Below are positions 6,906-59,701 of a stretch of 64,000 nucleotides of DNA, in pieces. Numbering within the stretch: position 1 is the stretch's first letter; each line of letters opens with the position of its first letter. The notes under the pieces were generated by a model. The model worked only from the letters and a program-made list of their open reading frames with translations, did no database searches and was not told the origin of the DNA. The position numbers and the translations under genes are program-made. Source of the DNA: Schmidtea nova (Eukaryota); assembly GCA_044892505.1 (NCBI GenBank), contig CM097883.1, positions 19,840,001 to 19,904,000 of the forward strand, given 5' to 3'.

Positions 6906-7113
6906 NNNNNNNNNNNNNNNNNNNNNNNNNNNNNNNNNNNNNNNNNNNNNNNNNNNNNNNNNNNNNNNNNNNNNNNNNNNNNNNNNNNNNNNNNNNNNNN
7001 NNNNNNNNNNNNNNNNNNNNNNNNNNNNNNNNNNNNNNNNNNNNNNNNNNNNNNNNNNNNNNNNNNNNNNNNNNNNNNNNNNNNNNNNNNNNNNNNNNNN
7101 NNNNNNNNNNNNN
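6906..7113. other. Assembly gap (N run)
   Basis: 208 N bases. Confidence 1.
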
Positions 7114-19791: not shown

Positions 19792-19962
19792 NNNNNNNNN
19801 NNNNNNNNNNNNNNNNNNNNNNNNNNNNNNNNNNNNNNNNNNNNNNNNNNNNNNNNNNNNNNNNNNNNNNNNNNNNNNNNNNNNNNNNNNNNNNNNNNNN
19901 NNNNNNNNNNNNNNNNNNNNNNNNNNNNNNNNNNNNNNNNNNNNNNNNNNNNNNNNNNNNNN
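19792..19962. other. Assembly gap (N run)
   Basis: 171 N bases. Confidence 1.
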
Positions 19963-25860: not shown

Positions 25861-27006
25861 TCATATGCCATGAATGTGCCGTCAAGACCGCGTTATAAAC
25901 ACTGACCGAATTTATTAAATGTGTTGTATGTTGTGTCATATGCCATGAATGTGTCGTCAAGACCGCGTTATAAACACTATGACCGAATTTATTTAATGTG
26001 TTGTATGTTGTGTCATATGCTATGAATGTGCCGTCAAGACCGCGTTATAAACACTATGACCGAATTTATTTAATGTGTTGTATGTTGTGTCATATGCCAT
26101 GAATGTGCCGTCAAGACCGCGTTATAAACACTTTGACCGAATTTATTAGATGTGTTGTAGCAGAGGTCCCCCATTAGGTTGGATTACGGTCGTCCACCAC
26201 ATTGACTGTATTTTATGTGTTGTATGTTATGTCATATGCCATGAATGTGCCGTCAAGACCGCGTTATAAACACTATGACCGAATTTATTTAATGTGTTGT
26301 ATGTTGTGTCATATGCCATGAATGTGCCGTGAAGACCGCGTTATAAACACTATGACCGAATTTATTAAATGTGTTGTAGCAGAGGTCCCCCATTAGGTTG
26401 GATTACGGTCGTCCACCACATTGACTGTATTTAATGTGTTGTATGTTGTGTCATATGCCATGAATGTGCCGTCAAGACCGCGTTATAAACACTATGACCG
26501 AATTTATTAGATGTGTTGTAGCAGAGGTCCCCCATTAGGTTGGATTACGGTCGTCCACCACATTGACTGTATTTATTGTGTTGTATGTTGTGTCATATGC
26601 CATGAATGTGCCGTCAAGACCGCGTTATAAACACTGTGACCGAATTTATTTGTTGTGTTGTATGTTGTGTCATATGCCATGAATGTGCCGTCAAGACCGC
26701 GTTATAAACACTGTGACCGAATTTATTTGTTGTGTTGTATGTTGTGTCATATGCCATGAATATGTCGTCAAGACCGCGTTATAAACACTATGACCGAATT
26801 TATTAAAAGTGTTGTAGCAGAGGTCCCCCATTAGGTTGGATTACGGTCGTCCACCACATTGACTTTATTTAATGTGTTGTATGTTGTGTCATATGCCATG
26901 AATGTGCCGTCAAGACCCCGTTATGAACACTATGACCGAATTTATTAAATGTGTTGTAGCAGAGGTCCCCAATTAGGTTGGATTACGGTCGTCCACCACA
27001 TTGACT
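25861..27006. repeat. Two-monomer tandem array (77-bp unit A, 65-bp unit B)
   Basis: Unit starts at 25921, 25998, 26075 (A), 26152 (B), 26217, 26294 (A), 26371 (B), 26436 (A), 26513 (B), 26578, 26655, 26732 (A), 26809 (B), 26874 (A), 26951 (B). Confidence 0.95.
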
Positions 27007-28014
27007 GGCATGCTTCTAAATAAAAAATTAAGGAATAACCTCTCACTCAAACCTCATTTATTAATACAATCATTTAAATACATATAAATACAAACATCAA
27101 TTAATACAAAAAACATTTTTTAGAAATATCTGTCACAAAAAATTATAATTAATGATTAAATACATATTTTGTTGGTGTTCGTGAGTTATTGGCAAATAAA
27201 CGAAAAATTATTACTTTGGCTATATCCTCAATAGCGTCGCATGATAACATTGTAAAACCATATTGTTACCCTTTACAATATAACGCTAGTCCTGTAACAA
27301 ATTAGTGGACATCCGCAAAAAGTGAGTTTCAAGTGGGTCAAAACTATAATTGGCCAGATGTCTCTGATGGGTTTAAGGGCGACCGATTGAAGGTATAATC
27401 CTCGTTTATGTCCCTTAATTATTTAAAATATCTACACTCTCCAAGTAACACTAGTATAGAGATTTTATCGATTACTTTGTTAGGCAAGTAATGGTAAAAC
27501 ATTTCTTACTTTTATTGTCTAAACACTTTATAAATGCAAATTTCATTTTAACTACTAGTAATTTATTAATAAAAATAATGACTTGGATTTTGAATTTAAT
27601 AAAATGGAGGGTGACGAATTACGAGCTGGAGACTTATAACGTTCCAAGTGTGAAATACGATCTTTAAGGTCGCGAATGGAACAAAGAGTATGAGCAACCA
27701 AGTTGACGGAGATTGGTTCTCATCTAAAAAGAATGGACAGTTAAAATTTGGTCTCGAGTTAATGTCAGCAAAAACAGCCCCTCGAACAATTTTGGGCTTT
27801 TTAGGCTTAGGTTTGAGCTTCTGACACCATTTTAAGTATCCTCAACACAATTAAAATTTCAAAGGTTCTTAACATCATTTTTATTTAAAAAAAAACCAGA
27901 ACAAATCTGCAAATTTTTTCAAATAAAAAATATAAAAAGGAAAAACTAATCACAATTTTAAAACTAATAATCAAAATAAAGTGAAATAATAAAACAAATG
28001 CCTTTTTCATAGCT

Positions 28015-32534: not shown

Positions 32535-32568
32535 AATTATTATTTAAATTCAAAATTTAAATCACTAA

Positions 32569-32571
<3 letters not shown>

Positions 32572-32624
<53 letters not shown>
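32572..32624. repeat. (AT)n microsatellite in the viral intergenic region
   Basis: Direct reading of the sequence. Confidence 0.95.
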
Positions 32625-32627
<3 letters not shown>

Positions 32628-32702
32628 TTAATAATTTAAATTTATAATTTATATAGCAACTTAATCACTATATAAGTAAGATTGACTTAAAATCATTTCA
32701 TT

Positions 32703-36456: not shown

Positions 36457-37556
36457 TTTGGCGTGTCTGAAAAGTAATGAGACTCCCCTTACCCCACTTA
36501 CAAGACAGACAGTTTGCAGTAATGCAATTTATTTTCATACAACATAGTATCCCTTGACTCGAATGACATCTTTAAAATGGGTATACAATCGTTCCCGCTC
36601 AATGCGTCTGAACAGCTGCAACGATTCCTTCTGAACCTCTTCTTTGGAGTGGAAGTCCCTCTTTCTGATGTCTTTTTTCAGGTGGTTGAACAACCAGCAA
36701 TCACGTTGATTCAAGTCTGGACTGTAAGCTGACTGACAGATCAGCTTGACCTGCCTTTGTTCAAAGAATTCCCTGGTGTGTACAGATGCATGAGGACGCG
36801 CATTGTCATGTTGCCACCAGAGCTGGTTAAGTCGTGTTGGAGAAGAAATCAAAGTCCTCCATTTTTCACCAGTATCATGGACAAACTCAGTGTATCGGTG
36901 AGAGGTCACTGTTTCACCAGATGGGACAGCATAAATATTGCACTTGCCATCTCCAGTGAATGTGAGAACAAGCATTGTCTTCTGATTTGTCAACTTTGGG
37001 AGGACAACTCGAGGTCTAGGAAGGTGAGGAGGAAGCCACGCATGGTTTTTCTCTTTTGTCTGTAGCCCTTTGAAGAGTACCCAGGTCTCATCCTGCGTGG
37101 CTCAGTAGCGAAGACAATCATCCATTGAGTTCTGATCCATAAACTTCACAATTGATTTGGCACAATCCACTCTGTCCTTCTTGTTGGCACCTGAGAGGAA
37201 ACTGGGAACCCATACTGAGCAAAGTTTCTTTCGTCCCAAATGATCCACCAGGATTTTACTTGCAGAATCTTTCGAGCAACCAACAGATTCTGATATTCGT
37301 CCACGTTGTTGTTCAATAAACGCATATGCACGAAAGTGCTCTTTGTTCAGCTTCTTTTGTGCAGTCGTTGCACTAAGACAAAGTATGCTACGAATCATGC
37401 CTTATATAGGGTCACACACGCATGTGTGTGAGTAGCCACCTGATTTAGTATAAAGTCTTGTGATTCGTTTAACGCAGTACCAATGCATAGCTAGCAGTTG
37501 TATATGTGTGTGTGTGTGTGGCATACGAAATCTCAATACTTTTCAGACACGCCAAA
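36457..37556 (-). mobile_element. Mariner (DD34D) element, defective
   Basis: 28-bp TIRs (TTTGGCGTGTCTGAAAAGTA.TGAGA.T, 2 mismatches) flanked by TA. A single frame 37398-36535 has WVP, TQDETW, HDNARPH and YSPDL with 34 residues between D2 and D3. One TGA at 37102-37104 and an N-terminal deletion. Confidence 0.95.
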
Positions 37557-39269: not shown

Positions 39270-41312
39270 TTTGATAATGTTTGATAATGTTTTTCGTTTG
39301 ATAATGTCTTAATAATGTTTGATAATGTTTCTCGTTTGATAATGTTTGATAATGTTTCTCGTTTGATAAAGTTTCTCATTTCTCGTTTGATAATGTTTTG
39401 ATAATGTTTGATAATGTTTCTCGTTTGATAAAGTTTCTCGTTTCTCGTTTGATAATGTTTGATAAAGTCTCTCGTTTCTCGTTTGATAATGTTTGATAAT
39501 GTTTCTCGTTTGATAAAGTTTCTCGTTTGATAATGTTTTCATAATGTTTGATAATGTTTTCATAATGTTTGATAATGTTTCTCGTTTGATAATGTTAGAT
39601 AATGTTTGATAATGTTTCTCGTTTGATAAAGTTTCTCATTTCTCGTTTGATAATGTTTTGATAATGTTTGATAATGTTTTCATAATGTTTGATAATGTTT
39701 CTCGTTTGATAATGTTTGATAATGTTTCTCGTTTGATAAAGTTTCTCGTTTGATAATGTTTTGATAATGTTTGATAATGTTTCTCGTTTGATAAAGTTTC
39801 TCGTTTCTCGTTTGATAATGTTTGATAATGTTTCTCGTTTGATAAAGTTTCTCGTTTCTCGTTTGATAATGTTTTGATAATGTTTGATAATGTTTCTCGT
39901 TTGATAAAGTTTCTCATTTCTCGTTTGATAATGTTTTGATAATGTTTGATAATGTTTCTCGTTTGATAAAGTTTCTCATTTCTCGTTTGATAATGTTTTG
40001 ATAATGTTTGATAATGTTTCTCGTTTGATAAAGTTTCTCGTTTCTCGTTTGATAATGTTTGATAATGTTTCTCGTTTGATAAAGTTTCTCGTTTCTCGTT
40101 TGATAATGTTTTGATAATGTTTGATAATGTTTCTCGTTTGATAAAGTTTCTCGTTTCTCGTTTGATAATGTTTGATAAAGTCTCTCGTTTCTCGTTTGAT
40201 AATGTTTGATAATGTTTCTCGTTTGATAAAGTTTCTCGTTTGATAATGTTTTCATAATGTTTGATAATGTTTTCATAATGTTTGATAATGTTTCTCGTTT
40301 GATAATGTTAGATAATGTTTGATAATGTTTCTCGTTTGATAAAGTTTCTCATTTCTCGTTTGATAATGTTTTGATAATGTTTGATAATGTTTTCATAATG
40401 TTTGATAATGTTTCTCGTTTGATAATGTTTGATAATGTTTGATAATGTTTCTCGTTTGATAAAGTTTCTCGTTTGATAATGTTTTGATAATGTTTGATAA
40501 TGTTTCTCGTTTGATAAAGTTTCTCGTTTCTCGTTTGATAATGTTTGATAATGTTTCTCGTTTGATAAAGTTTCTCGTTTCTCGTTTGATAATGTTTTGA
40601 TAATGTTTGATAATGTTTCTCGTTTGATAAAGTTTCTCGTTTCTCGTTTGATAATGTTTGATAATGTTTCTCGTTTGATAAAGTTTCTCGTTTGATAATG
40701 TTTTGATAATGTTTGATAATGTTTCTCGTTTGATAAAGTTTCTCGTTTCTCGTTTGATAATGTTTGATAAAGTCTCTCGTTTCTCGTTTGATAATGTTTG
40801 ATAATGTTTCTCGTTTGATAAAGTTTCTCGTTTGATAATGTTTTCATAATTTTTGATAATGTTTCTCGTTTGATAATGTTAGATAATGTTTGATAATGTT
40901 TCTCGTTTGATAAAGTTTCTCATTTCTCGTTTGATAATGTTTTGATAATGTTTGATAATGTTTTCATAATGTTTGATAATGTTTCTCGTTTGATAATGTT
41001 TGATAATGTTTCTCGTTTGATAAAGTTTCTCGTTTGATAATGTTTTCATAATGTTTGATAATGTTTCTCGTTTGATAATGTTTGATAATGTTTCTCGTTT
41101 GATAAAGTTTCTCATTTCTCGTTTGATAATGTTTTGATAATGTTTGATAATGTTTCTCGTTTGATAAAGTTTCTCGTTTCTCGTTTGATAATGTTTGATA
41201 ATGTTTCTCGTTTGATAAAGTTTCTCGTTTCTCGTTTGATAATGTTTGATAATGTTTCTCGTTTGATAAAGTTTCTCTTTTCTCGTTTCTTATTTCTTGT
41301 TTGATAATATGC
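39270..41312. repeat. Modular satellite built from TTTGATAATG, TTTGATAAAG and TTTCTCG words
   Basis: 2 kb composed almost entirely of these 7-11-bp words; a higher-order duplication with about 713-bp offset is visible. Confidence 0.95.
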
Positions 41313-42367
41313 AACTGTAAAATAGCTGTGCCAATTATTAGCTAGTTTTAGTTTTTAATATTTTTTAGCGATTCGTTTTTAATTTGTGTATTGGACTTAC
41401 TATAGTTATTTACTATAGTAAGACAATTTAAATTCATTTTGAATTTATAATTTAAAATTTGGTTAATTTTGGTTAATTCCAAAATTAATTATAAATAATA
41501 ATAAATAAAAAATATAAATAAAATAAAAGTTGGGAGGGGGGAATATACAACACACGCACTAAAAAACATCCCAAAATAAATAAATTACACAAATTTTGAT
41601 CATAACACACACATATATATATATGTGTGTGTATTTTTTTATTATAATTTTTTATAATTTTATAATTTTTATAATTTTTTTAATTTCTATAATTTTTTTA
41701 TAATTTTTTAAATAATTTTTTTAAATAATTTTATTATTATAATATATATTGTGAATGCTTTTATGTTTTTATCAACAGAAATCTGCAAGGGCCCAAAAAA
41801 GTCTCCAAAAGCTTATTGTTGGGACAATTGGGGTGTATGCTTTGCTGATGCGTTGGTTAAGTTTGTCAACTGAGGTTATATTTGATGTTATTCGTCAGGG
41901 TAACCTCGCCAACATAAAAACGCTTCCCCGTTGACACCCATGATGTATCCCTAACTACTCATCATGTTGGTATTGTTTCAACGTTGTGAAATGACAAGGC
42001 AGGTGAGCAACCTTGCGGCTACTATTCCCTTGTTTATTCACGGGTCCACCACTACCGTTAGAAGGCCTGTGTGGCTTTGTTCCGGTCCCTTCTTACTCAA
42101 TCTCTCAACTAGGGTATATTCGATTTCTGTACGTCCTATAGCATAAAATGAATTTGGTTTTGTTCAATCATCTCATTGATTTAAACGACACATACATTCC
42201 CCATTCATGCAAGTCAATCAATTCAGTTAGAATACATTTATTTAATTCAACAACACAGATGGGTTTATCACTGCGAGTAGCTGTTTCTCGGCGAGACCAC
42301 TCAGAAGGTCCACCTCAATTCCAATTCGTTCGGCATACTTTCTTCTTTCCCACCGTCGTTTCGCGCC

Positions 42368-42799
42368 TTATCGATTTTTCCGTTTTGTTCGCTTGGATCC
42401 CTCGGCTTTCGGTGTAGTTTTCGGAGTATCCACTGTCGAACTCACATCTATCTCTGTCTGCACACTTGTAGAGACACTTGTGGACTCTATCCAGCGGTTG
42501 AAGGTGCTGGCTCGGATGAGAGGTCGTAGCTGTTGTGTTATGAAGTCCTTCATCGACGCCCTCATGTAGTTGTTCAACTCCAGTTTCACGGCCGCTGTTT
42601 CCTGTGCTTGGTCCTCAGCCCTTCGCTCGGCGTGATATATGGCTTCCTGTATCGTTTTCACGCGTTCCGAGTGAAACCACGTCCTTTTGATTATGCGATT
42701 CTTATTTGCCATTTGGCCTATTCTACTTTCGAGTGCTGCAACTCGTTTGCGCGCTTCTTTCGCCTCCTTCCGGTAATCTCGATTGGTTGGGGCATGCAT
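42368..42799 (-). CDS. Hypothetical coiled-coil protein with a basic C-terminal tail
   Basis: 143-codon ATG ORF in a GC-rich island immediately downstream of ORF-family copy B. Confidence 0.5.
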   Translation of the reverse strand: MHAPTNRDYRKEAKEARKRVAALESRIGQMANKNRIIKRTWFHSERVKTIQEAIYHAERRAEDQAQETAAVKLELNNYMRASMKDFITQQLRPLIRASTFNRWIESTSVSTSVQTEIDVSSTVDTPKTTPKAEGSKRTKRKNR

Positions 42800-43667
42800 C
42801 TACAAGGAAAAGAATAAGACGATTTTATCGGTAATTACGTGGATAGCGCCGGCTCTTTCCCTCTCTCTGGGGGCCCTAATAAATCAATTCAATCCGGTTT
42901 TCCCCCAGTAATGCTCTAATTCGTTCTCCACTCATCATTCAATTTCACCCATTCAAGACAGAGAAATTTCTAACTACACATATATTTATTGAGCATTACA
43001 CCCATATACAAATCTATCACAAGTCAGCGAGTCTTTACCAGAAATCTAAGATATCCTGGTCACAACTCCGGTCGTCCCATCCGTGCGCATTTGGTTGGTA
43101 GAATTCCGGACACGGAATTCAGCACAGGGTGTCACGATACATGAAGATCTCGTTCAGTCGGTTGTACTTCTCATTTCGTAGTGAATTCATATCCTGATTT
43201 CCTGGAGCATTTGAGTAGGGACGAAATTCGCCGGTACGTCTACATTGCGGCTGATCTAGCAGCACGTATCCAATCTGCTTTAGCCTCTGGGTTGATAGGT
43301 GATTGAATGCGAGCAACCATTGAGGGGTGGCTTGTGTAATGTTCTGTGGACACCCGTTTGAATACAAAATTCTGACATAAATAGATGTTTATGAGTGTTT
43401 TATGTACCTCTGAAATTGTGTGAATCGGAGTTGTAAAAAGGTTGTTAGATATGTGAAAATTTTATTATTTGGTTATTTTATTGTACATTGTTTAGGATTA
43501 TGTGAATTGGGGTTGTAGAAAGAATTATTAAATATGTAAAAATTTTATTATTTGGATATTTTATTGTGCATTGTTTAAAAGAGTTTGTTAAGCGGTTAAC
43601 CCGCGCACAAATTAATAGAAATAAATATTTAAAAGAAATTTCTTAAAATTTCTTACTAATTGATCAA

Positions 43668-44768
43668 ATGATTTTCATTATGATAAAATTAATATATATT
43701 TTTGAATTTATCCACAGTATCTTTACAAACAAATTGTTGCAAGTCGATATTAGACTGACAGACATCGCCAGGAATATTGAATCTGTTAATGCTACGGCAA
43801 CTTATAATGTTGAATTTGTCAATATGAAGTGGAAAATAAACGTTTTTTATTACAAATACTTTCTAGATGTCAGACCATTGAAAGTTTCTGCTAACGGTAA
43901 ATGTTTGGAAGTGCCTATCAATTCCTATGGATACATCCCTACGGAGTCCAAGGAATCAATGTTGGGATATTTCCGCATCAATGATAAATATGGAATCAGC
44001 AGATTAGTTGAATCGCATGATAAGCGCTATCAACCGATTTACATCGCTAACGTGCCAGTGATTATTCTGCCTGAAATCACAGAAATAGTCGCCTTAGAAA
44101 TGAAGGGATTTATGGAACTATCTAAAACTTTAAAACTAAATAATTTTAATAAACATTGCTATGCCAAAGTTGTTATTGTGCTCTACTTTTATGTCAATCT
44201 TAGTGATAACATTGAATTTGTTACTGAGAGAGAGAAATTTATAAAGATCGAAATATGTGTACAGAATATACTTCTCCGTTTAAACTTGATATTTAATCAA
44301 CTCCCGTGGGAAATAAGGATCGAGTTCTCGGTAGATAACTTGCCTATTTTGACTCCAAAAATGTGCTTGAGTGACTTTAAAGGTCCCCGTTATCCGGTTT
44401 CAGTGAATAGTTATGGCAATTTGAGTTTAAGTGCCCGGGAATTGCTCGAACTTTTTAAAAGTGATTCTTCTAGTAGATGTTTTAAGTTGGAAGGCCAAAT
44501 GCCGTTCACCGGTATGGTTTTAAGGTTGAATGCTACTTTCTATAGATCTTTGACAATGATCGTCCAACATTATTACATCGACATTATTTTCGGATTGTTT
44601 GTATTCATTGTCTGTACAATGTGCATTTTTGAAGGTTCTTATATGATGAACTTATTAGTCTCAAGAAAATTACGATTTTATTGTCAATTGATGTCCTATC
44701 AAAATCCGAAAGTGAATGTAGTTAGAGTATGTACTGTACTATCAAATCCATGTGTGTATCATTTTTAA
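43668..44768 (+). CDS. Unknown 366-aa protein with a two-fold internal repeat and a hydrophobic TM-like segment
   Basis: W.I...P.K....V.(I/V)NSYG occurs twice. Hydrophobic segment YYIDIIFGLFVFIVCTMCIF. The ATG lies inside the left TIR. Confidence 0.65.
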   Translation: MIFIMIKLIYIFEFIHSIFTNKLLQVDIRLTDIARNIESVNATATYNVEFVNMKWKINVFYYKYFLDVRPLKVSANGKCLEVPINSYGYIPTESKESMLGYFRINDKYGISRLVESHDKRYQPIYIANVPVIILPEITEIVALEMKGFMELSKTLKLNNFNKHCYAKVVIVLYFYVNLSDNIEFVTEREKFIKIEICVQNILLRLNLIFNQLPWEIRIEFSVDNLPILTPKMCLSDFKGPRYPVSVNSYGNLSLSARELLELFKSDSSSRCFKLEGQMPFTGMVLRLNATFYRSLTMIVQHYYIDIIFGLFVFIVCTMCIFEGSYMMNLLVSRKLRFYCQLMSYQNPKVNVVRVCTVLSNPCVYHF

Positions 44769-44996
44769 ATGGTTATTCAATCTTATGAGATCCTCCTTGG
44801 GTCATTACCCGATGGTTTCGATAGAGCTTTGGTTCGACCCGGAATCCTCCTTTCCCTGTTATCCGACAAAACTAAAGTATATTCATATTTTTTTGTAAAT
44901 TTATGTAAATTAATCAGCGAGGGAACAAAAATAAAATTGATGAATCGGCAACCACGCCAAAAATCTGCATACCTTGGTGTGGTTTCCGGTTCATCA
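44573..44996 (+). repeat. LTR or LTR-part; 419-bp direct repeat with 47364-47782
   Basis: Two substitutions noticed between the copies. Internal TGATGAAC (44644) and terminal GTTCATCA (44996) form 8-bp inverted termini. AATAAA at 44930. The second copy lacks the final CATCA. Confidence 0.85.
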
Positions 44997-46409
44997 AATT
45001 GGTGTCAGAAGTTACTCCCTCCCTCCAGTAACATTTATATTATCCTAAATAACACTTTATTTTATTCTATTCCCACATTTATTATTTTTCCTATTCCTTC
45101 CCAAATGGAGGCGCTACAATCCTGGGCGGGACTAACTGAATTGAAGGTACATGGAAACCACATCATAAGAACAACCGGGTTTTTAAACATTAAGAGGAAA
45201 CAAGTATCACACAAGTTCCTCTTCCGGTGTCTTAACAAGACTTCCGGATGGCAACCTCTGTGTCCGACGAAGTCACATTTGTCCTCAATGTCTTCATTGC
45301 TCCTAGCAATTGGCGTCCCAAGGGAAACACACCGCCACTTCTTTGTCAAGAAGTCCCAATCGGCGACACATACCCCAGTCATCACCACCTATTTCAACAT
45401 TATTCCCCGTTTGACTGGAGGAATGCAAACCGATGAGGCTAACGCAGACTGTGAAATCAGTCACATACAACCGCCAACACAACAAACAACACCAGTTATT
45501 ACCCCAATACCGTTTTTCCTAGACGGCGTTGGCTCCCCACAAACGTGGTTCCTGGCACTAGAAGTGACTCCAACCTTTCTACCCACTCAATCTCAAGGGC
45601 AGAAGTTTGGTGCACTCTTGTCCATGCTTCCAAGCACGATTTACACCACATTGTCCACCGCCATTGCAACTGCAGCCACGGCAAGTGAGCCCTACAACTC
45701 ACTGAAATCTGCAGTGCTAGACGCTTACCGACCAAAATTAGATCATTTATATGAGGCTTGGTTCCGAAATCAACCTCTCAATAATGAAAGACCAAGCGCC
45801 TTCCTCAAGCGAGCCAAGGAACAACTCGAGAGGATCCAGGCCGGTCTTACCAAAGACGACGCTCTACTCCGTAGGTTCTTTCTAAAAGCACTACCTACAT
45901 CAGCACAGTCCATTCTGGCCGTTGTTCCAAACACAACATTGGAAGAACTAGCCAAAATTGCCGACAAGATCGTGGAAATCAACACGTCACCTGTTACTCC
46001 ATCACCGGTAGTCGCAACAACAAGCCTCCCACACGCCGAATTAGGAGCACTAGTCAGCGCCATAGCTGCTTTAACATCGAGGATGGACAATTTAGACGCA
46101 AGTCTACACACCCGAGGTCGAAGTCGAACAGACAGTCGTGACAACAATCAAAAACGACATCGGTCCACATCTGCACGAGGGCTCATATGCTCCTACCATA
46201 AGACGTACGGAGACAAAGCCCAACATTGCTATGTCGGTTGTAGGTGGAACAACCGACTTCCAACATGCCTGCCTCGCAACCTTTGCATCTATCACGCAAT
46301 ATTTAAGACCGAGGCCAAAACATGCTTGGAAGGCTGCCGTTTCCATACTGGTAATCACAATACCAGTAACGTTAATCAAAATTCGTATAATAAGCCTTCG
46401 GAAAACTGA
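44769..46409 (+). CDS. gag: Gypsy gag (CsRn1-like CHCC type) with a long upstream in-frame extension
   Basis: P.F...P..WF..LE ... PY..LK..L ... RPS.FL ... LR..FL..LP ... LA..AD pattern. Two C-x2-H-x9-C-x3-C motifs. Confidence 0.88.
   Translation: MVIQSYEILLGSLPDGFDRALVRPGILLSLLSDKTKVYSYFFVNLCKLISEGTKIKLMNRQPRQKSAYLGVVSGSSNWCQKLLPPSSNIYIILNNTLFYSIPTFIIFPIPSQMEALQSWAGLTELKVHGNHIIRTTGFLNIKRKQVSHKFLFRCLNKTSGWQPLCPTKSHLSSMSSLLLAIGVPRETHRHFFVKKSQSATHTPVITTYFNIIPRLTGGMQTDEANADCEISHIQPPTQQTTPVITPIPFFLDGVGSPQTWFLALEVTPTFLPTQSQGQKFGALLSMLPSTIYTTLSTAIATAATASEPYNSLKSAVLDAYRPKLDHLYEAWFRNQPLNNERPSAFLKRAKEQLERIQAGLTKDDALLRRFFLKALPTSAQSILAVVPNTTLEELAKIADKIVEINTSPVTPSPVVATTSLPHAELGALVSAIAALTSRMDNLDASLHTRGRSRTDSRDNNQKRHRSTSARGLICSYHKTYGDKAQHCYVGCRWNNRLPTCLPRNLCIYHAIFKTEAKTCLEGCRFHTGNHNTSNVNQNSYNKPSEN
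45000..45012 (+). promoter_or_regulatory. Primer-binding site, tRNA-Leu-like
   Basis: TGGTGTCAGAAGT 3 nt after the LTR end, complementary to a 3' end ACUUCUGACACCA as recalled for tRNA-Leu(CAA). Confidence 0.8.
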
Positions 46410-47363
46410 AAACGCCATCGAACTCCCCCACAGTTTTTGATGGCGATCCCATAACCTGTGGACTCTTTTCTGTTCCCGCCGTACCTCATTCCCAGAACTC
46501 TAACGAAGTCGATGCCCCCATTCACTTCGTTATCGATAGCGGTTCCATCATCTCATTCCTACCTAATCGGTTCGGAACTGATAATAATCAAAAAAGGTCC
46601 TTCCGGACAGCCAGTGGCGAAAACTTTTCCACTATTGGAACAAAAAACTTAATATTCCAAATTCCTGGTCTGTCCAAAACTTTTTCATGGACATTCCAAG
46701 TCGCCGAGGTGATTCATCCACTCTTAGGTGCCGATTTTCTTGATGCTGAAGGTTTACTCCCTGATTGCAGAGAACGCAAATTAATCCTCTCACAACACAC
46801 ACCTAGAGCTCAAGTTCTTGACCACCTCTGTAGTGACGCCCTCAATCTCTTACCCGCCACACCTTGCTATATACAACAATTACTAAAGACGTTCCCAAAC
46901 GTCGAAAAGAGATCAAACAATCACAAACAAACCCTCTCTTTTCTACACGTCATAGTCACCAATAACGGTATGCCTAACAGAGAACGTATGCGACCACTCG
47001 CGCCCGAGAAGCTCACACTTGTCAAGGAAGAATTCAATAAGCTACTCGAAGCCGGTACTATACACCGATCGAATTCCCCTTGGGCATCACCCATCCATGT
47101 GGTTACAAAAAAAGACGGATCTATCCGCGCCTGTGGTGACTACAGACGCCTCAACAAAGTCACTATACATGACTCTTACCCCATGCCACTTATATCAGAC
47201 GTTCTTTCGAGATTACCTGAAGCTACAATCTTCTCCACTCTAGATCTAAAAAAGGCTTACCACCAAATCCCGGTAGCACCAGAAGACATCCCGAAGACCG
47301 CTGTTATCACCCCTTTTGGCTTGTTTGAATACAAATACATGCCATTCGGTCTCCGAAACGCAG
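46390..47363 (+). pseudogene. pol: Gypsy pol, truncated (aspartic protease plus N-terminal half of RT)
   Basis: In the -1 frame relative to gag: FVIDSGS, LLGADFL, SPWASP, DYRRLN, LDLKKAYHQIP, MPFGLRNA. It then joins the LTR repeat at 47364; no YxDD, RNase H or integrase. Confidence 0.92.
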
Positions 47364-48886
47364 TTACATCGACATTATTTTCGGATTGTTTGTATTCATT
47401 GTCTGGACAATGTGCATTTTTGAAGGTTCTTATATGATGAACTTATTAGTCTCAAGAAAATTACGATTTTATTGTCAATTGATGTCCTATCAAAATCCGA
47501 AAGTGAATGTAGTTAGAGTATGTACTGTACTATCAAATCCATGTGTGTATCATTTTTACATGGTTATTCAATCTTATGAGATCCTCCTTGGGTCATTACC
47601 CGATGGTTTCGATAGAGCTTTGGTTCGACCCGGAATCCTCCTTTCCCTGTTATCCGACAAAACTAAAGTATATTCATATTTTTTTGTAAATTTATGTAAA
47701 TTAATCAGCGAGGGAACAAAAATAAAATTGATGAATCGGCAACCACGCCAAAAATCTGCATACCTTGGTGTGGTTTCCGGTTTTAATTTTATCATAATGA
47801 AAATCATTTGATCAATTAGTAATAAATTTTAAGAAATTTCTTTTAAATATTTATTTCTATTAATTTGTGCGCGGGTTAACCGCTTAACAAACTCTTTTAA
47901 ACAATGCACAATAAAATATCCAAATAATAAAATTTTTACATATTTAATAATTCTTTCTACAACCCCAATTCACATAATCCTAAACAATGTACAATAAAAT
48001 AACCAAATAATAAAATTTTCACATATCTAACAACCTTTTTACAACTCCGATTCACACAATTTCAGAGGTACATAAAACACTCATAAACATCTATTTATGT
48101 CAGAATTTTGTATTCAAACGGGTGTCCACAGAACATTACAGCTTGCTCATTTTCAAATTGTATAAACCACTTCGCAGACGTTTCCGTGATTGCTCCTTGC
48201 GGCATTGGCCAAGAGAGGTCTCCTTCCCACCGCACTCGTAGTTGGAACAACAATGTGGTATCACGTACCGATGGATTAACGTGACTCCGCATCCATGCTC
48301 GTAGGTGTCGTTCTGCTGCATTCTTGATACTTATCGGGATAGTTTACGAATTTATGAATTTCATCTCCTTGTCAGAGCGACGCCTCCGCGGGACTTTATC
48401 CTGGTGCATTTTCTGAATAAAGGGTGGAAGAATTAAAGACGGGGTCGGGTAACTCTCGCATCATTTCATCATGCATCTCTCAAACCTCATCATACCTTGT
48501 CGCTCTCAATTCACATCATACATCATACAATCGACATAAATGATCATTACCTGAACGCGTTTATTCGAATTTTTGTTCATCTTCATTCAGTGGCGGACTG
48601 GCTACTTATTCTCAGGGTTGCTGATGTACCTCAGGGGCCCGTAATTGCATGCAGGGTCACGAATTCTTTCTAAACAAATTTTACCTCTATGTTAAATTTA
48701 CGTGAAAAATGACTTTTGTGCACACTATGGTAGTTACACACCAACATTGTAATATCATTTGATTACCCATTAAAAAGAAAATGATTAGATAGGCTACTTA
48801 TTAAATATTACAGCTCATTTAACACCAGAAAACAACACGTACAGTATGTGGAGCAAGTAACAGGCAGAAATAAACAGGAGAAAATG

Positions 48887-51782
48887 TTAGTACAGTAAAG
48901 CACGTTTTAATTCGTTAGAACTTTTTGCAAGGTGGTCTATGATGACATCATGATCTATGGGGAAATTCTTCTCTTCTAAAGCAATCAACATTAGTGCTTC
49001 TAGGTGTGGTTGTCCAATCGTTGAGCGCAATCGACTTTTTATTATTTTCAATTTGCTAAATGAGCGTTCACAACTGACCTGTGTACAGCTGAGTGTCATG
49101 ACCATCTTATACACAATGTACAAATTTGTGTAGGAGGAAACAAATAAATTAAGGAAAATCGAGAGCTTTGAAAGCACATACAAGACAGTTCTGACAAGGA
49201 ATGTTACTTTTCAAGCATATATCTTGAGTGTGCTCGATATCTTCATCAAAATTCAATGGACTGCTAGCCTCATTAACAGAAATTTCAGTTTGAAGGAAAT
49301 TACTGGACTGTATATCCCGGTAGCTGAGAGCAAACGAGACCAATTCATCACGCAAATCACACACATCTACATTCGCCATGCCTGCCAATTTTAAAAGAAG
49401 TGACGGATTTTCTTTGAGATAGGATTGGATGCTGTCAAACTTGTTCGGATCCAAAAGGCTTATGTCCATATACAGATCCTTGTTGGCAGAAAATCTTGAC
49501 TGGACTTGTGTAATTGCATTGTCAATTACACATTTAAAAGTGTCAATTTCAAATTTCCGGTTTGCAGAAAATGTGTATTCTTTTTCGTCATCTGCTTCAT
49601 AATTGAATTTCTTTGGTACACGATGTGGTCGGTGTGTATCATTTGCAATAAGACTTGAACTAACACCATGTTCTGTCAGCAAATTGATTTGTTCGATGAA
49701 CTTTACAGCTTTGGAGTGTATTTCATCAAACTTGTCTCGCATACAAAGTAAATGTCTTTCCAGATTGGTGATCATATTTAAGGCAGTCAAGATATCAAAA
49801 CCCTTGGTCTGCAAGTATTTTGAGACAGGTGATGTCATCAAGAAGATTTCCATGTACATGAAAGCAGATAAAACGTTTTCAAAGTTTTTCCAGTTGTCAT
49901 ACAATGACGATGCTTGAAAAGACACCTTGCTTTGAAATTCCGTAGACTGTGCAATTTCGTTTAATGTGTCCAGGACTAATATGAACCTTTGAGGATCGGG
50001 TTGACTTAAAGAGCCAAATATTGATTTCAAAGAATTTTCCCTAGCACTCCAACGAATCTCAAATATCTTTTTTAGCTTTACCTGTCGAGGTAGACCTTCT
50101 GAGTTTTGGATCCAGACAAGCATGCGTTTGTGAGATTCACTAAAAAAGTTAGCAGTGGAGTTGATTAGTCCAAACAAATTTTTTGTGCTTAAACTGGTGC
50201 TGGTTGCTTGTGCCATAACTAGATTGAGGGCATGTGCATAGCAGTGGATGTAGACCGAATTAGGTGATTCAGATGCAATTCGACTTTGGACACCTTGATA
50301 TTTGCCAGACATATTGGCAACTCCATCAAATGACTCTCCCAATATTCTTTCAACTTTTAAATTATCTTGAGTCAAACTGTCACGCATGATGTTGAACAAG
50401 TTTTCCCCCGAGGAAGAGTTAACAGAGATAAGGTGGTAAAGATGTTCATGAACAACACCTTCACGGACATATCGCAACACAATAGGTAATTGGTCAGTAA
50501 CGGATACATCTTGTGTAGAGTCCATTTGGATACTAAATGTGTAAATACCTCGTTCACTTGTTTGGTCAGTTGCTGTTTAATACAGTTACCAATAATAATC
50601 AAAATTTTGGATAAAATAGTTTTTGAAAAGAATGTTATAAATGATCCTCGTCCTGTTCCAGTTGAATAATGAGATTTTCTCTGCAACTTAGAAATGTGAT
50701 TTTGCAAAACTGAATCATATTTGGCCATTAGTAAGATCAATTCGAGATAATTACCATGATTATTTGAGAAATCCTTCAGAGAAGCGAAATTTTCATTACG
50801 ATAAGCTCTGAAACCAATGCACTGTTTTGCTAAGTACATTATTATATCCACAAGACGATGTAATATCAAGCGATTTGCTTTGACTTCTTGCTGCCGTTTT
50901 GCAATCATGTCAGTGTTTACATAATTTTCAATATTTTGTTCGCTTTTAGCGCGTAAATAAGCATTGACACTTTGCTTGTGGGTATCAGATTGTTCATGCT
51001 TCTGCACTTTAGCGTAAACATTTTTGACTGCTATCAAACAACCATCGTTTGCAAAAGGATGTTGAGCTGTCATATCGTCATCGAAACACATGCATAAAGA
51101 GCAATATAATTTAGAACTGATTGAATTCAATGAAAGCCATGTTCGGTTTACCTTCTCTCCATCGGATATTTGTCGATAATATAAAATCGAATAGTGTTTA
51201 AGGGTAAAGGCATATGTGGTTGTAATGGATGTTTGGCGATGAATTCCATCTTATGTACTAAGGAGGCGGATGAATGTGGTCGCTTAAACAAATCAATGCA
51301 CATTGCTTCATGGTTGTCATGTTCTTCAAAATGTTGCATTTGTTCTGATACAATTGCTCGTACAGAAGTTTGAGAGGATTTGACGATACCATTCTCATCA
51401 TTTTCGACTTCTTGAGAAAGTATCAGTTCAGATGCTGGAAGCTGTTCCGACTGTTGTGACAGTCCAATAATAGATGGTAATATTGAGCTACATATGACAG
51501 GCTGTTGTGAATGCATGATAGAATTGATAACTATCGGTAACATTGATTCTTTGCTGATGGACTGACTTTCTGAATGTGATGGGTTGACTGTTTCTTCAGT
51601 GCTGGCTGTCCTGCACAAATTAAAATAACATAAAACACACATAATGAAATAGGGCCTATATATGATTGCATGACTCACATGACAAATGATAATTTTCTTT
51701 GTTTTGGATCACAAGCTGCCTGGCCAATCTTATTTTGAGATATCAATTTTCGCTTTTCTGCACCTGATTTATGTTTGTACAT
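48887..51782 (-). pseudogene. ZMYM/TTF-type hAT transposase with one intron and three frameshifts
   Basis: Exon 1 MYKHKSGAEKRK (51782-51679), intron 51678-51611 (GTGAGT..TGCAG), RTWLS..LYCSLC, FSIQMDSTQD, FDG..NMSG, HCYAHALNL, RWSAR, and the SCERSFSKLK dimerisation motif. Confidence 0.92.
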
Positions 51783-55800: not shown

Positions 55801-58800
55801 GACCAATATTGTCACTGCTTACTAGGAGGATGCTCCAGAGTTTTACTAGGAGCAGATAGAATAGAAGAACTTAACAATCACCTCGCAACACATAACGAAA
55901 GAATCACAATAAAAACCACATTCAAATGCAACCTTTGCCTATCTAAAAACTGATTCTTTTTAGCGAAATTCTACAAAACATCAACAAAAATCACCCAACA
56001 CAACCTCCCAAACAAACCAAACAAGACGCCATTTACAATAAAAAACTAATGTTTTTATCCTTCAACAAAGAAGGCACCATTCTATGTAACATCAATGATC
56101 TCACTAGCTGCCCAAACAACCTCACAATCTACTCAACCTATGACCAAATAAATAAACACCTCCACCAAAAACATAGAAAAAAATATGTGACATAAATAAA
56201 ATTAAATGTTATTGTAATACTGAACTTGAGCATCATAACATTAAAGAACACCATAATGAACACTTAGGAATAACACCTGAAGACCCTAACACAATAACCA
56301 TTCCTGACACCATCCTTGTTTCCAACTCTGATATAGGTTCTCATTGACTAGACCAAAACACCATCTCTCTTTTCTTCCACAACTTTGTAAAAAAGACTTC
56401 CACGATCTTTATAGAACCTTTCATAGGCCTTTCTCTTATTAAAAAAGACTTCAATACCTTCTTTAACAACTTCCCTTTCAAAGACTACCCTAAATGGAAT
56501 GAAATTATTTGGCCTTTAAAAATACAAGGGCACCTCTGGATTGTTTTTTATCTTAACAAAAAAAATAAAATAGCTACTATTATTGACCCAACCTCTCCAG
56601 AAAGCCTTGAAAAACATGAAAATATCTTTTTCGATATATACAACGCCATCAAAAACATACACTCTATAATCACACCAATTAATATACCACCAACCAGCCT
56701 CAATATCCCTACTTGTAACAATATTCCACAATCTAACTTTTTTCTCTGCGGCATCCTCAAGGACCTTAACCACAATAATCCAATAACCACTCCATGCATA
56801 GATGACATTAAATATGACCTAGATGAACTCATCAAAAAAAACCATCAACGAAAGAAAACCCGACACAGATGCCACAAAATTTTACAACCACATTAAAAAT
56901 CTGACTGTTTCCCTCAACAACAACGAAGATACAGATTCTAATCTTACTTTAATTAAAAAAATCCACGAAGTTATTTTTAATAATAAATACTTTAAAAATC
57001 AATTAAAAAGAATATTAAATATAAAAAAATTAATCTTACTTATACTCTTAGAAGAAATTACAAAATTAAATGTAAAAAAACGATTGATGACATTATATAT
57101 AATAAACCAAATTTTTCTACTCCAGACCCACTTAATATTTCAAAACATTTTTTAACAAATAAAATTAACCTTAAAAATCTTAGTAATTTATCAAACCAAC
57201 AAATCGATGTTATCACCCCCCAATTCTCACTTATCGAAACTATAACCATCGATGAACTTACGAAAGCCTTCGAAACTCTAGATAAACGTTCCTCTCCTGG
57301 TTCAGATAAAATTTCCTATAGAGAATGGACTTTAATGGATCCTGACCACTCATTCCTTACTGCACTCTTCAACAATATTCTTAGAAATAAAAATAGTCCA
57401 TTAAGCTGGAAAACCTTCAAAACCAAACTTCTGCTTAAGCCTGGTAAAGACAACAAAACCTTCGAACTTTCCTCTTGGCGACCCATAGCTATCCTTGATA
57501 CTTCTTATCGCATATTCTCTTCTGTCCTTAACCTCAGACTCCTTGAATGGATCAAACAATTTAATGTTATTTGTCCAAACCAAAAAGCAATCGGCATCCC
57601 TGCTGGCTGTTCCGAACATAACACTGTCCTATCACTCATTAACGAAAGATCCTTCAGACGAAATACTGATATTAACTTCATATGGCTGGATCTTGCTGAT
57701 GCTTTTGGCAGCGTCCCCCATGATCTAATATGGCATACTCTTGAAAACCTTAATTTTGACACACAATCAATTGACCTTCTAAAAAATATGTATGATGATG
57801 TATACACTTTTTATGATTGTGAGGGAAACCTTACGAATAACATCAAAATTAATAATGGGGTGAAACAAGGCTGCCCCATGTCTATGACCATCTTTTGCCT
57901 TGCTATTGACTTCATCTTAAAAGACATCCTCCTTAACTTTCCTTATATTATCAATGACTACAATATAAGTATTTTGGCGTATGCAGATGACATAGTTCTG
58001 ATAAGTGAGAATAGGGATAAAATGAAAGAGATGCTCAATAGAACAATAAAATTAACTGATAAAGTAGGCTTAAAATTTAGACCAAGCAAATGTGGTTATT
58101 ACCAACATAAGAGAAACCATAACGATGAACCGCTCAAAATATATAATGAAAATATCCCCATAATCAACGAAGAGAATCTTTATAAATATCTAGGTGTGGG
58201 TTTTGGAGAAAAGGGTAAACATAACATCGATAATATCCTAGAAAAGGCACTTTTTGATACTGAAAAGATTTTTCAATCCGACCTCCACCCCACTCAAAAA
58301 ATTCACGCGTATAAAACTTTTATTCACTCCAGACTAATATTCCCCTTTAGAAATTGTAACGTTAACCACATGATCCTAGACTGTAACCGCAATAAGTCCG
58401 TCCAACATAGAGCTAAACAACTAGGCTTTGACCAAAAAATTAAAAAACTCTTAAAAAACCTGGTAAATGATAAATTTCAAAACATAAACAATAACTTTTT
58501 CTACGCTAACATAAACCTTGGGGGTATTGGAGTCACACCTAGTATAGACGAATATCTTATTCAAAGCATTATTCATTTTATTAGACTCCTTAACTCTAAG
58601 GATGAAAAAATGAAAAACTTTATATTAAATGAACTTATTGAAGCTACCCAAAAACGATTCAGAAATAAACAAATCGAAATGGCAGCAGCAATAAAGTGGA
58701 TAAATGGTGATTTGAAAGGGGATAACAGCGGTACTTTTTCTATCTTTTCTAAATTTCGAGATTCGGTTAACAGAATCTTCGAAAAATTTAATATAAAAAT

Positions 58801-59701
58801 TAAAATAGTTCAAATTGACAACACTTACCAACTAAACATTACAAAAGATGAATATAATCATTATATAAAATCTGATAATCTAGACCAAGGCTCTGAGGCC
58901 ATTCATATTTTGACAAGTAAATGGTACGCTGACTGCTGGAATAAAATGACCTGCCAGGGACACATATCTAAAACTATAAGTGATAGTGGCTTTTCCTCAC
59001 ACCTCCTTAAATATGATGAACTAACTGACCAACAATTTTTTTCCCTTATAAAAGCTCGTAATAATAGTCTAAATCTAAACTACTCACAAAATAGAAAAAA
59101 GAACTCCCTTAATATTAACTGTAGACTTTGTAACAAAGACTGGGAAACCCAAGCCCATATTTTTAATCACTGTCCAATTACCCAAAACGCTAGAAGAAAC
59201 AAGCATACACATGTGCTTGAAAAAGTTAAAAATTTTTTCATAAATAAGGAATACCACGTTGACATAGAATGTGCGCCTCCGGGAGTAGAAACCACCCTAA
59301 AACCTGACTTAATTATTTAAAACTTAAATGATAAAAATATTCATATTGTAGACATTAAGGTCCCCTATGACACACAAATAAATTTTGATAACGCGAGAAA
59401 AGATAACTATGATAAATACCTAAAACTCTCCCTAGACACCGCCAAAAACAATAAATGCATAACAACCCTCTCAGCAATAGTTGTAGGAACAATAGGATCT
59501 TGGGACAGTGAAAATGACAAATATCTTAGAAAAATAGGATTAGGTGAAACAGCTATTAAGTCACTTGCCAAAATATGCATGAAAGCAGCAGTTACGGCTA
59601 GTTTTAAAATATATATGGATCACATTACTAATAATGCTCCAACTAATGTTAACCTCCCTTCAAACAACCATTTATCTCCTCAAACAACCATTAAACTTTA
59701 A
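52843..59701 (+). mobile_element. NeSL-clade (RLE-type) non-LTR retrotransposon, disrupted
   Basis: Ulp1-like protease (H*LDQNTI..IIWPL..GHLW..IDP..PQ..LCG, about 56330-56800), RT (SSPGSD, WRPI, DLADAFGSV, GVKQGCP, LAYADD, YKYLG), CCHC knuckle CRLC..H..C, KPD...DIK endonuclease across one TAA at 59318-59320. Frameshifts in the 5' half. Confidence 0.9.
57335..59320 (+). CDS. Reverse transcriptase plus CCHC region of the NeSL-like element
   Basis: 661 open codons containing all non-LTR RT motifs. Confidence 0.93.
   Translation: MDPDHSFLTALFNNILRNKNSPLSWKTFKTKLLLKPGKDNKTFELSSWRPIAILDTSYRIFSSVLNLRLLEWIKQFNVICPNQKAIGIPAGCSEHNTVLSLINERSFRRNTDINFIWLDLADAFGSVPHDLIWHTLENLNFDTQSIDLLKNMYDDVYTFYDCEGNLTNNIKINNGVKQGCPMSMTIFCLAIDFILKDILLNFPYIINDYNISILAYADDIVLISENRDKMKEMLNRTIKLTDKVGLKFRPSKCGYYQHKRNHNDEPLKIYNENIPIINEENLYKYLGVGFGEKGKHNIDNILEKALFDTEKIFQSDLHPTQKIHAYKTFIHSRLIFPFRNCNVNHMILDCNRNKSVQHRAKQLGFDQKIKKLLKNLVNDKFQNINNNFFYANINLGGIGVTPSIDEYLIQSIIHFIRLLNSKDEKMKNFILNELIEATQKRFRNKQIEMAAAIKWINGDLKGDNSGTFSIFSKFRDSVNRIFEKFNIKIKIVQIDNTYQLNITKDEYNHYIKSDNLDQGSEAIHILTSKWYADCWNKMTCQGHISKTISDSGFSSHLLKYDELTDQQFFSLIKARNNSLNLNYSQNRKKNSLNINCRLCNKDWETQAHIFNHCPITQNARRNKHTHVLEKVKNFFINKEYHVDIECAPPGVETTLKPDLII

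Follow-up and report, generated by a model that had tools for sequence, protein, structure and literature searches.

Which kind of mobile element ends in long inverted repeats next to a target site duplication (TSD) and at the same time holds a long terminal repeat (LTR) retroelement in its interior, together with a coding sequence of another origin? This question was raised by a composite unit of 4806 bp, located at positions 43335-48140 of a 64,000-nucleotide stretch of the Schmidtea nova genome (assembly GCA_044892505.1, contig CM097883.1, positions 19,840,001 to 19,904,000 of the forward strand). The whole stretch is referred to as the window, and all coordinates are given within it. The reading favoured here, with a probability of roughly 0.4, is that the unit would be a one-off chimera, formed by LTR-mediated retroposition through template switches and inserted by an integrase-type enzyme via two identical TG...CA ends. 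The chimera would be non-autonomous, its sources would be one Ty3/Gypsy retroelement and the transcript (or the DNA) of an ADAM-like host gene, and the enzyme would be an integrase-type DDE enzyme acting in a single insertion.

The outer limits of the unit were given by the following features:

Positions 43330-43334 (no strand): left copy of the TSD, GCTTG, read directly and the same as 48141-48145.
Positions 43335-43692, plus strand: left inverted arm of 358 nt, with a GC content of 0.25 and the outer end TGTAA, made up of 345 nt preceding a start codon and 13 coding bases.
Positions 43415-43577, plus strand: two tandem copies of an 83-bp unit (86% matches) inside the left arm, mirrored in the right arm at 47898-48060.
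Positions 47783-48140, minus strand: right inverted arm, which repeats 43335-43692 in the opposite orientation and includes the first 13 coding bases of the gene.
Positions 48141-48145 (no strand): right copy of the TSD, GCTTG, read directly.

By exact count, the two arms differed at one of 358 positions, and immediately inward of them only 5 of 30 bases were identical, so that the pairing did not extend any further. According to the repeat finder, 4090 nt are enclosed by the arms. The unit starts with TGTAA and finishes with TTACA. The 358-bp inverted termini, the TGT...ACA ends and the 5-bp TSD described in the initial annotation were all recovered in this way. A 5-bp match at fixed positions is expected by chance in about 1/1024 of cases, and a TSD of 5 bp together with TG...CA ends are the hallmarks of an integrase. 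The presence of the TSD at both ends also upheld the claim of one real integration of a composite unit with inverted ends. A flanking open reading frame (ORF) on the minus strand, which had been said to rejoin in frame across the unit, contributed less. By frame arithmetic on the two pieces, left unjoined, both share the same frame after discounting 4806+5 bases. Nevertheless, this ORF adds little beyond the TSD, because it comprises only about 120 codons and its family search returned no match. The real evidence for a single insertion event is the TSD, rather than the flanking ORF.

The second repeat of the unit is a direct one, and its first copy is the following:

Positions 44573-44991, plus strand: direct repeat of 419 bp, copy 1, composed of 71 bp of a gene segment coding for a transmembrane (TM) helix and of the LTR minus its last 5 bp.

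The other copy is located at 47364-47782. The two copies, which make up the 419-bp repeat named in the initial annotation, showed sharp edges on both sides and 2 mismatches in 419 positions (99.5% identity). The whole unit can be described as a walk on a single template with two switches, whose start and finish both lie at the 43335 end: from 43335 to 47363, back to 44573 and on to 44991, and then along the opposite strand from 43692 to 43335. The joint at 47782/47783 is blunt, the right arm being fused to an LTR without its last 5 bp. All the parts are young and of similar age, since the repeat pairs differ at only 1/358 and 2/419 positions and the gag-pol region is unbroken.

The similarity of the two direct copies bears on an assembly artefact as well. 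The 419-bp repeat might have been wrongly traversed, which would have fused an arm-gene-LTR-arm element of about 2 kb to a separate Gypsy chimera. A short-read graph could change path inside copies that are 99.5% identical, and the assembly is not gapless, two runs of N being present in the window (6906-7113, 208 bases, and 19792-19962, 171 bases). However, the copies differ at two positions, usually enough for assemblers to separate them, and the outer junctions are backed by the TSD and by the matching flank frames. Both non-canonical junctions are in unrepeated sequence, so they must be real somewhere, and the association of the gene with the LTR stands regardless. Mis-threading was considered very unlikely.

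The interior of the unit was composed of these parts:

Positions 44644-44996, plus strand: complete LTR of 353 bp, Ty3/Gypsy, running from TGATGAAC to GTTCATCA.
Positions 45000-45011, plus strand: sequence resembling a primer binding site (PBS), read directly 3 nt past the LTR, with a TGG start.
Positions 45105-46409, plus strand: gag ORF of 434 codons with DUF7041, unbroken from the first ATG after the PBS.
Positions 46394-47363, plus strand: truncated pol, with the protease region and the N-terminal part of the reverse transcriptase (RT; RVT_1), in the -1 frame and with a 16-nt overlap with gag.
Positions 47364-47434, plus strand: 71-bp re-copy of the TM-coding segment of the gene, between the truncated RT and the second LTR.
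Positions 47435-47782, plus strand: second LTR copy, which has lost its last 5 bp and is without the terminal CA, otherwise 99.5% identical.

The layout of gag and pol, in the -1 frame and with the 16-nt overlap, is the normal arrangement. A total of 2321 relatives of the RT were found at E<=1e-10, and the named ones were Ty3/Gypsy gag-pol or pol polyproteins, the best of them being a spider sequence with about 54% identity. When 120 RT relatives were aligned to the interior, each one gave one single high-scoring segment pair, with 0 frame changes and 0 stops. To judge from these similarities, the interior RT is of the Ty3/Gypsy type, and the Gypsy-derived interior with a truncated pol proposed in the initial annotation was thus borne out by RVT_1, by DUF7041 and by the Ty3/Gypsy relatives. 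The single defect of pol is that it is cut off within the RT at 47363. RNase H and integrase were absent, and neither the ORF list nor the domain searches gave any further pol-type ORF or domain in the unit. A polypurine tract was also absent upstream of the second LTR, where gene sequence is found instead of a purine run. Without a complete RT, RNase H, integrase, polypurine tract and U5 terminus, the unit is unable to replicate itself. The LTR pair is internal to the unit, and the TSD adjoins the inverted arms and not the LTRs. At the locus of the nearest named RT relative (L001, on the spider contig JAFNEN010001410.1), the identity to the pol piece was 37% and no LTR pair was present. A Gypsy-type RT unit of 3.58 kb occurs at 4558-11720 of L001 as two head-to-tail copies with 99.8% identity.

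Inverted termini that enclose an RT-bearing interior are also known from DIRS-like elements, which have inverted terminal repeats and a tyrosine recombinase. The probability of such an origin was taken as practically negligible. The unit has a clean 5-bp TSD, which DIRS elements, as the initial annotation pointed out, do not make, and its RT relatives are Ty3/Gypsy gag-pol proteins; these two facts exclude it. In addition, the unit yielded neither a recombinase ORF nor an internal complementary region, and its arm derives from the host gene at least in the inner part.

The limits of the LTR were decisive for another explanation. A length of 353 bp was assigned because GTTCATCA precedes the PBS-like TGG and its reverse complement, TGATGAAC, is unique in the 1.65 kb upstream. 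The two motifs, at 44644 and at 44989-44996, form a perfect 8-bp inverted pair, and TGATGAAC was found once only within 43335-44988. One of the two models offered previously had invoked instead a family with a coding LTR of 1.66 kb (43335-44996), integrated through two U3 ends. The outer end of this segment is TGT and the 366-codon ORF described below lies wholly inside it, and the inverted arm is in keeping with two like ends. This last part of the model, two like ends in integration, fits the data and was retained. The long LTR itself, however, is highly improbable. Its ends (TGTAAT... and ...TCATCA) are not mirrored, in contrast to the perfect 8-bp pair of the 353-bp LTR; the outer arm end matches the LTR ends at only 2-3 of 12 bases; and the homology to the host gene halts exactly at the start of the 353-bp LTR. 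In the retroviral replication scheme, sequence upstream of the 5' LTR is not inherited via the normal strand transfers. One replication cycle could not yield a full long 5' LTR alongside a 3' LTR shortened to 419 bp, a combination that conflicts with the rules of strand transfer. The long LTR had also been called on to explain why the direct repeat begins 71 bp upstream of TGATGAAC; these 71 bp correspond to the TM-coding segment of the gene in both copies, which fits LTR-mediated retroposition better.

The gene in question is represented by the following frame:

Positions 43668-44768, plus strand: chimeric ORF of 366 codons, with the native ATG at 43680 and with the last 41 codons and the stop encoded by the LTR.

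This ORF gave no Pfam match, and a word-indexed protein search found no relative. An exhaustive HMMER search retrieved three relatives, with E values of 5e-97 (P0121, 810 aa), 5e-19 and 2e-12. All three carry the Reprolysin (M12B) domain, and P0122 and P0123 also carry Disintegrin. The zinc-binding motif HExxHxxxxxH and a disintegrin/Cys-rich region are present in P0121 and in P0124, and the nearest solved structures to P0121 were those of ADAM10 and ADAM17. Relatives of the ORF were represented only by four UniParc entries, and the viral contigs searched contained none. When the ORF was aligned with P0121, its N-terminal 247 residues matched at 58% identity, followed by a gap of about 304 residues and then by the TM-helix segment. 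The comparison points to two defects. The first is an in-frame internal deletion of about 304 codons, which removed most of the catalytic domain, with the zinc motif, and the disintegrin/Cys-rich region; the second is a 3' truncation, through which the cytoplasmic tail was swapped for the 41 LTR-encoded codons. Otherwise the ORF is free of stops and frameshifts, the gene copy forming one uninterrupted frame. On the basis of these protein similarities, the ORF is best described as a fragment of a predicted ADAM/reprolysin-type membrane metalloprotease gene, with the front part and the TM segment kept, and it is not the novel ORF for which it had been taken. Between P0121 and P0124, the identity was 81% up to about residue 673 of P0121, and from there the two proteins diverged wholly. 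Their C-terminal parts (about 690-810 in P0121 and about 687-987 in P0124) may derive from different neighbouring sequences included in the gene models.

An alternative identity of this ORF was considered, in which it would be the C-terminal half of an env-like glycoprotein reaching over the 3' LTR; it was prompted by the TM segment and by the N-glycosylation sequons. It was rejected because the relatives are cellular-type ADAM proteins and the ORF matches their N-terminus.

The position of the gene's start changed the interpretation of the arms. The native N-terminus of P0124 aligns from codon 5 of the ORF, which places the gene's own ATG within the left arm, at 43680, and coding continues unbroken across the inner edge of the arm at 43692/43693. 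The boundary between the left terminal inverted repeat (TIR) and the ORF, previously taken for a junction, is therefore not one. Since the arm takes in the native ATG and 13 coding bases and coding runs uninterrupted across its edge, the arm is not a discrete transposon TIR with a cargo behind it, and a division into a 358-bp TIR and a cargo from 43693 onwards was discarded for the same start codon. As for the right arm, it repeats the first 358 nt of the unit in inverted form, as a secondary copy, and 47782/47783 is the only real junction on the right-arm side. A splice acceptor was also considered at the sequence ...ccacag, located upstream of the homology, which would imply a genomic capture; this was rejected, as the P0124 alignment runs straight through it.

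The junction of the gene with the LTR also bears on the choice between the models. The ADAM similarity stops at ...SYMM, at 44648, and the LTR begins at 44644, which leaves 4-5 nt common to both. At this site P0121 has MM and P0124 has MI, so the first 4-5 nt of the LTR would also be expected of the gene. The chance of such an overlap, as in an integrase-made insertion, is about 1/256 to 1/1024, whereas it is predicted by a template switch guided by microsimilarity or by end joining at a free cDNA end. In both LTR copies, the host-gene sequence extends directly up to the first base of U3, with this 4-5-nt overlap. In the right half, the 71-nt gene piece stands in for everything from the middle of the RT to the 3' LTR, polypurine tract included; in the left half, the same gene extends upstream beyond its native ATG until the unit ends.

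By analogy with published cases, the right half (LTR-PBS-gag-truncated pol-host piece-LTR) reads as the documented signature of LTR-mediated retroposition. In animals, chimeras have been described in which a piece of host mRNA replaces the interior of an LTR element, with a median microsimilarity of 6 bp and multiple switches (Tan et al., 2016, PMC5131818). The RT switches between retroelement RNA and co-packaged host mRNA, and partial mRNAs, including 5' parts, are copied (PMC5131818); maize Bs1 and yeast Ty1-mRNA chimeras are cited there as further cases. The unit resembles these chimeras in that part of a host gene replaces the interior between pol and the 3' LTR and in the probable gene/LTR microsimilarity (4-5 nt, inferred from the relatives, against the median of 6 bp). 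Further resemblances are the possibility of more than two switches, the retention of both LTRs and a non-autonomous product. The fact that the second LTR is preceded by gene sequence and is 5 bp short at its end was likewise counted in favour of a chimera. Four features set the unit apart: a second, much longer stretch of the gene, with the ATG and 345 nt upstream, is located outside the 5' LTR; its first 358 nt recur in inverted orientation beyond the 3' LTR; the TSD adjoins the gene-derived ends; and the 3' LTR is without its terminal 5 bp.

A sequence of events that would account for these features can be proposed. The minus strand, having copied U3, would jump to the ADAM-like mRNA at the TGATG overlap, guided by microsimilarity, and after 71 nt it would return into the RT, as in classic LTR-mediated retroposition. 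The 71-nt homology would later let synthesis proceed along the host RNA to its 5' end, and the rest of the gene and the 345 nt upstream would thereby be placed outside the 5' LTR. The resulting cDNA would have a gene-derived left end, ending in TG/CA, and a defective right (U5) end. Because the right end would be defective, concerted integration would use two copies of the good left end. The inner free ends would then be sealed by end joining, which would leave the inverted arm, the blunt junction and the 5-bp TSD. An LTR-type integrase has few requirements beyond TG...CA. The insertion step has a precedent in yeast, where the integrase of Ty1 accepts any DNA with TG...CA ends and generates 5-bp TSDs, and where composite plasmid-Ty elements were observed (Friedl et al., 2010, PMC2939329). 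The insertions of that system are like the unit in that DNA without LTR ends is inserted, with TG...CA ends and a 5-bp TSD. They differ from it in that the yeast system is a laboratory one with overexpressed integrase, whereas the unit is natural, in a repeat-rich genome of the animal type, and both of its ends are copies of one end. The junctions are read directly from the DNA; the order of events and the enzyme are what we infer from them.

Several points weigh against this retroposition chimera. Only a single copy was found, none else being present in the window or in the searched collections, and repeated mobility is left without support. The ORF comparison is at the protein level, with the introns and the upstream sequence of the parental gene outside it. 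The 345 nt ahead of the ATG hold 8 ATG triplets, the random expectation; the idea that the left end was the 5' end of an mRNA is weakened, since 8 ATGs are atypical of a translated 5' leader. The junctions at 47363/47364 and 47782/47783, inspectable from one side, show no microhomology. The reading further presumes the in vivo use of two like ends from two molecules, and several steps are demanded here as by any other model.

Scope for these searches was as follows. Self-BLAST and a mismatch-tolerant pattern search gave no other copy of any part of the unit in the 64-kb window, and metagenome contigs, scanned by terminus pattern and by protein, gave no further copy. An Rfam scan of the unit returned only sub-threshold chance matches, and the arm, folded as single-stranded DNA, was unremarkable (z = -1.85).

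The upstream ATG triplets and the arms also bear on a different origin, a Pack-TIR-like DNA transposon with a Ginger/TDD-like or other integrase-related transposase, whose short native TIR would be confined to the outer arm. A family of this sort would have taken up, or already borne, the 5' region of the ADAM-like gene together with a Gypsy cDNA; gap repair would then have copied the wrong (left) end in inverted orientation, creating the long arms, and template switching would have produced the 419-bp re-copy. The terminus is of the TGTNR type (TGTAA), the ends are inverted and flanked by a TSD, and the arms contain subterminal 83-bp tandem repeats, as do many TIR elements. The 345 nt upstream are unlike a translated leader, and in animals Pack-TIRs are known to have arisen by gap filling or by template switching, their junctions being blunt or with microhomology (Tan et al., 2021, PMC8277862). 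Pack-TIR and Pack-MULE elements share with the unit the inverted arms and the TSD around captured non-transposase sequence, the blunt or microhomology junctions and a chimeric ORF. Nevertheless, their arms belong to an identifiable TIR family, whereas the arm of the unit has no family match and holds the start codon of the captured gene, so that a native TIR could account for no more than a portion of it. The searches of the unit gave no transposase, and those of the window no further occurrence of the terminus. Unlike a Pack-TIR, moreover, the unit has a cargo that includes a retroelement bounded at its cDNA ends: the gene/LTR junction falls at the exact U3 end with the 4-5-nt overlap, and the other Gypsy boundary is 5 bp from the U5 end. 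Boundaries so close to the ends of a cDNA point to free cDNA ends or RT switches, rather than to the DNA-level capture of a chromosomal copy. A transposon of this kind was judged somewhat unlikely; in addition, the TSD, in its length and its sequence, and the arm, in its length, are at odds with metazoan Ginger.

The parallel with Ginger-type transposons drawn in the initial annotation was examined with the description of Ginger1 and Ginger2-TDD (Bao et al., 2010, PMC2836005). The unit shares with them the TGTNR terminus (TGTAA at both ends) and the inverted ends, and its 5-bp TSD has the same length as in Dictyostelium TDD-4/5 (PMC2836005). Membership, nevertheless, fails on both TSD and TIR. 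The TSD of metazoan Ginger has 4 bp, at CCGG/CCGT or in AT-rich RTATAY targets (PMC2836005), unlike the 5-bp GCTTG of the unit, and Ginger TIRs measure 40-270 bp, against an arm of 358 bp that is partly host coding sequence. Ginger encodes an integrase-like transposase, whereas the ORF and domain searches found none in the unit. A further likeness is to the acutely transforming retroviruses, in which host coding sequence is also fused to a defective retroelement by non-homologous or microhomology switches, with partial loss of pol. The unit differs from them in that its host segment is partly outside the LTR pair and in showing no sign of an infectious agent or of a selected function.

The surroundings of the unit in the window were also analysed. 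The features are listed by position:

Positions 17369-18764: block of 1.4 kb with direct and inverted self-matches of 73-88% identity, a complex array of short units; related units are also found at 32552-32653 and 41633-41750.
Positions 25861-27007: tandem array with a periodicity of about 75-150 bp and copies 80-96% identical.
Positions 36535-36993, minus strand: short ORF with a weak match to DDE_3 (Tc1/mariner-type endonuclease), a transposase remnant by appearance.
Positions 40879-41314, minus strand: ORFs in which a short peptide unit recurs (a minisatellite that looks coding), bordering a very AT-rich stretch with a GC content of 0.26.
Positions 42368-42799, minus strand: coiled-coil-like ORF of 143 codons, with no significant family match.
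Positions 48887-51678, minus strand: hAT-type transposase with DUF4371, zf-C17orf113 and a C-terminal hAT dimerisation domain, spread over at least 4 ORFs.
Positions 57335-59320, plus strand: ORF of 661 codons with RVT_1 and zf-RVT, a non-LTR (LINE-type) reverse transcriptase.

On the minus strand, the hAT transposase immediately precedes the insertion site, with the composite about 750 bp past its last stop, and the insertion may have hit an older hAT element in its 3' part. The GC content at 41700-43334 and 48141-50000 was 0.40-0.47, against 0.21-0.35 in most of the window, a contrast that suggests a target within another foreign or repeat-derived block.

Regarding its classification, the unit is best filed as an LTR-mediated retroposition chimera bearing inverted gene-derived ends. 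As a single copy, it is a lead and not a demonstrated new class. A wider reading, which was considered unlikely, is that the unit would be a natural snapshot of the way in which a retroelement chimera gives rise to a DNA element bounded by TIRs and mobilised by an integrase. A defective cDNA would gain a non-LTR TG/CA end from a host transcript and integrate via two inverted copies of it, and ready-made inverted termini would result. If true, this would be the kind of intermediate that has been postulated, though never seen, in the descent of Ginger-like transposons from LTR retrotransposons. It has been proposed that the TIRs of Ginger come from LTR ends in opposite orientation (PMC2836005); compared with this proposal, the route by which the unit came to have inverted, integrase-compatible ends would be another, though a related one.

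If the assembly is right, the locus holds a young natural insertion of the integrase type that had two copies of a host-gene-derived end as its substrate, and not LTR ends. Additionally, the event left a new frame, in which the ADAM-type N-terminal region would be set straight onto a membrane anchor, with no protease or disintegrin parts and with an LTR-encoded tail; such a frame is the raw material sought by gene-capture studies. One molecule would thus join the LTR-mediated retroposition of a host mRNA, the tolerance of integrase for TG...CA ends and the proposed transition from LTRs to TIRs.

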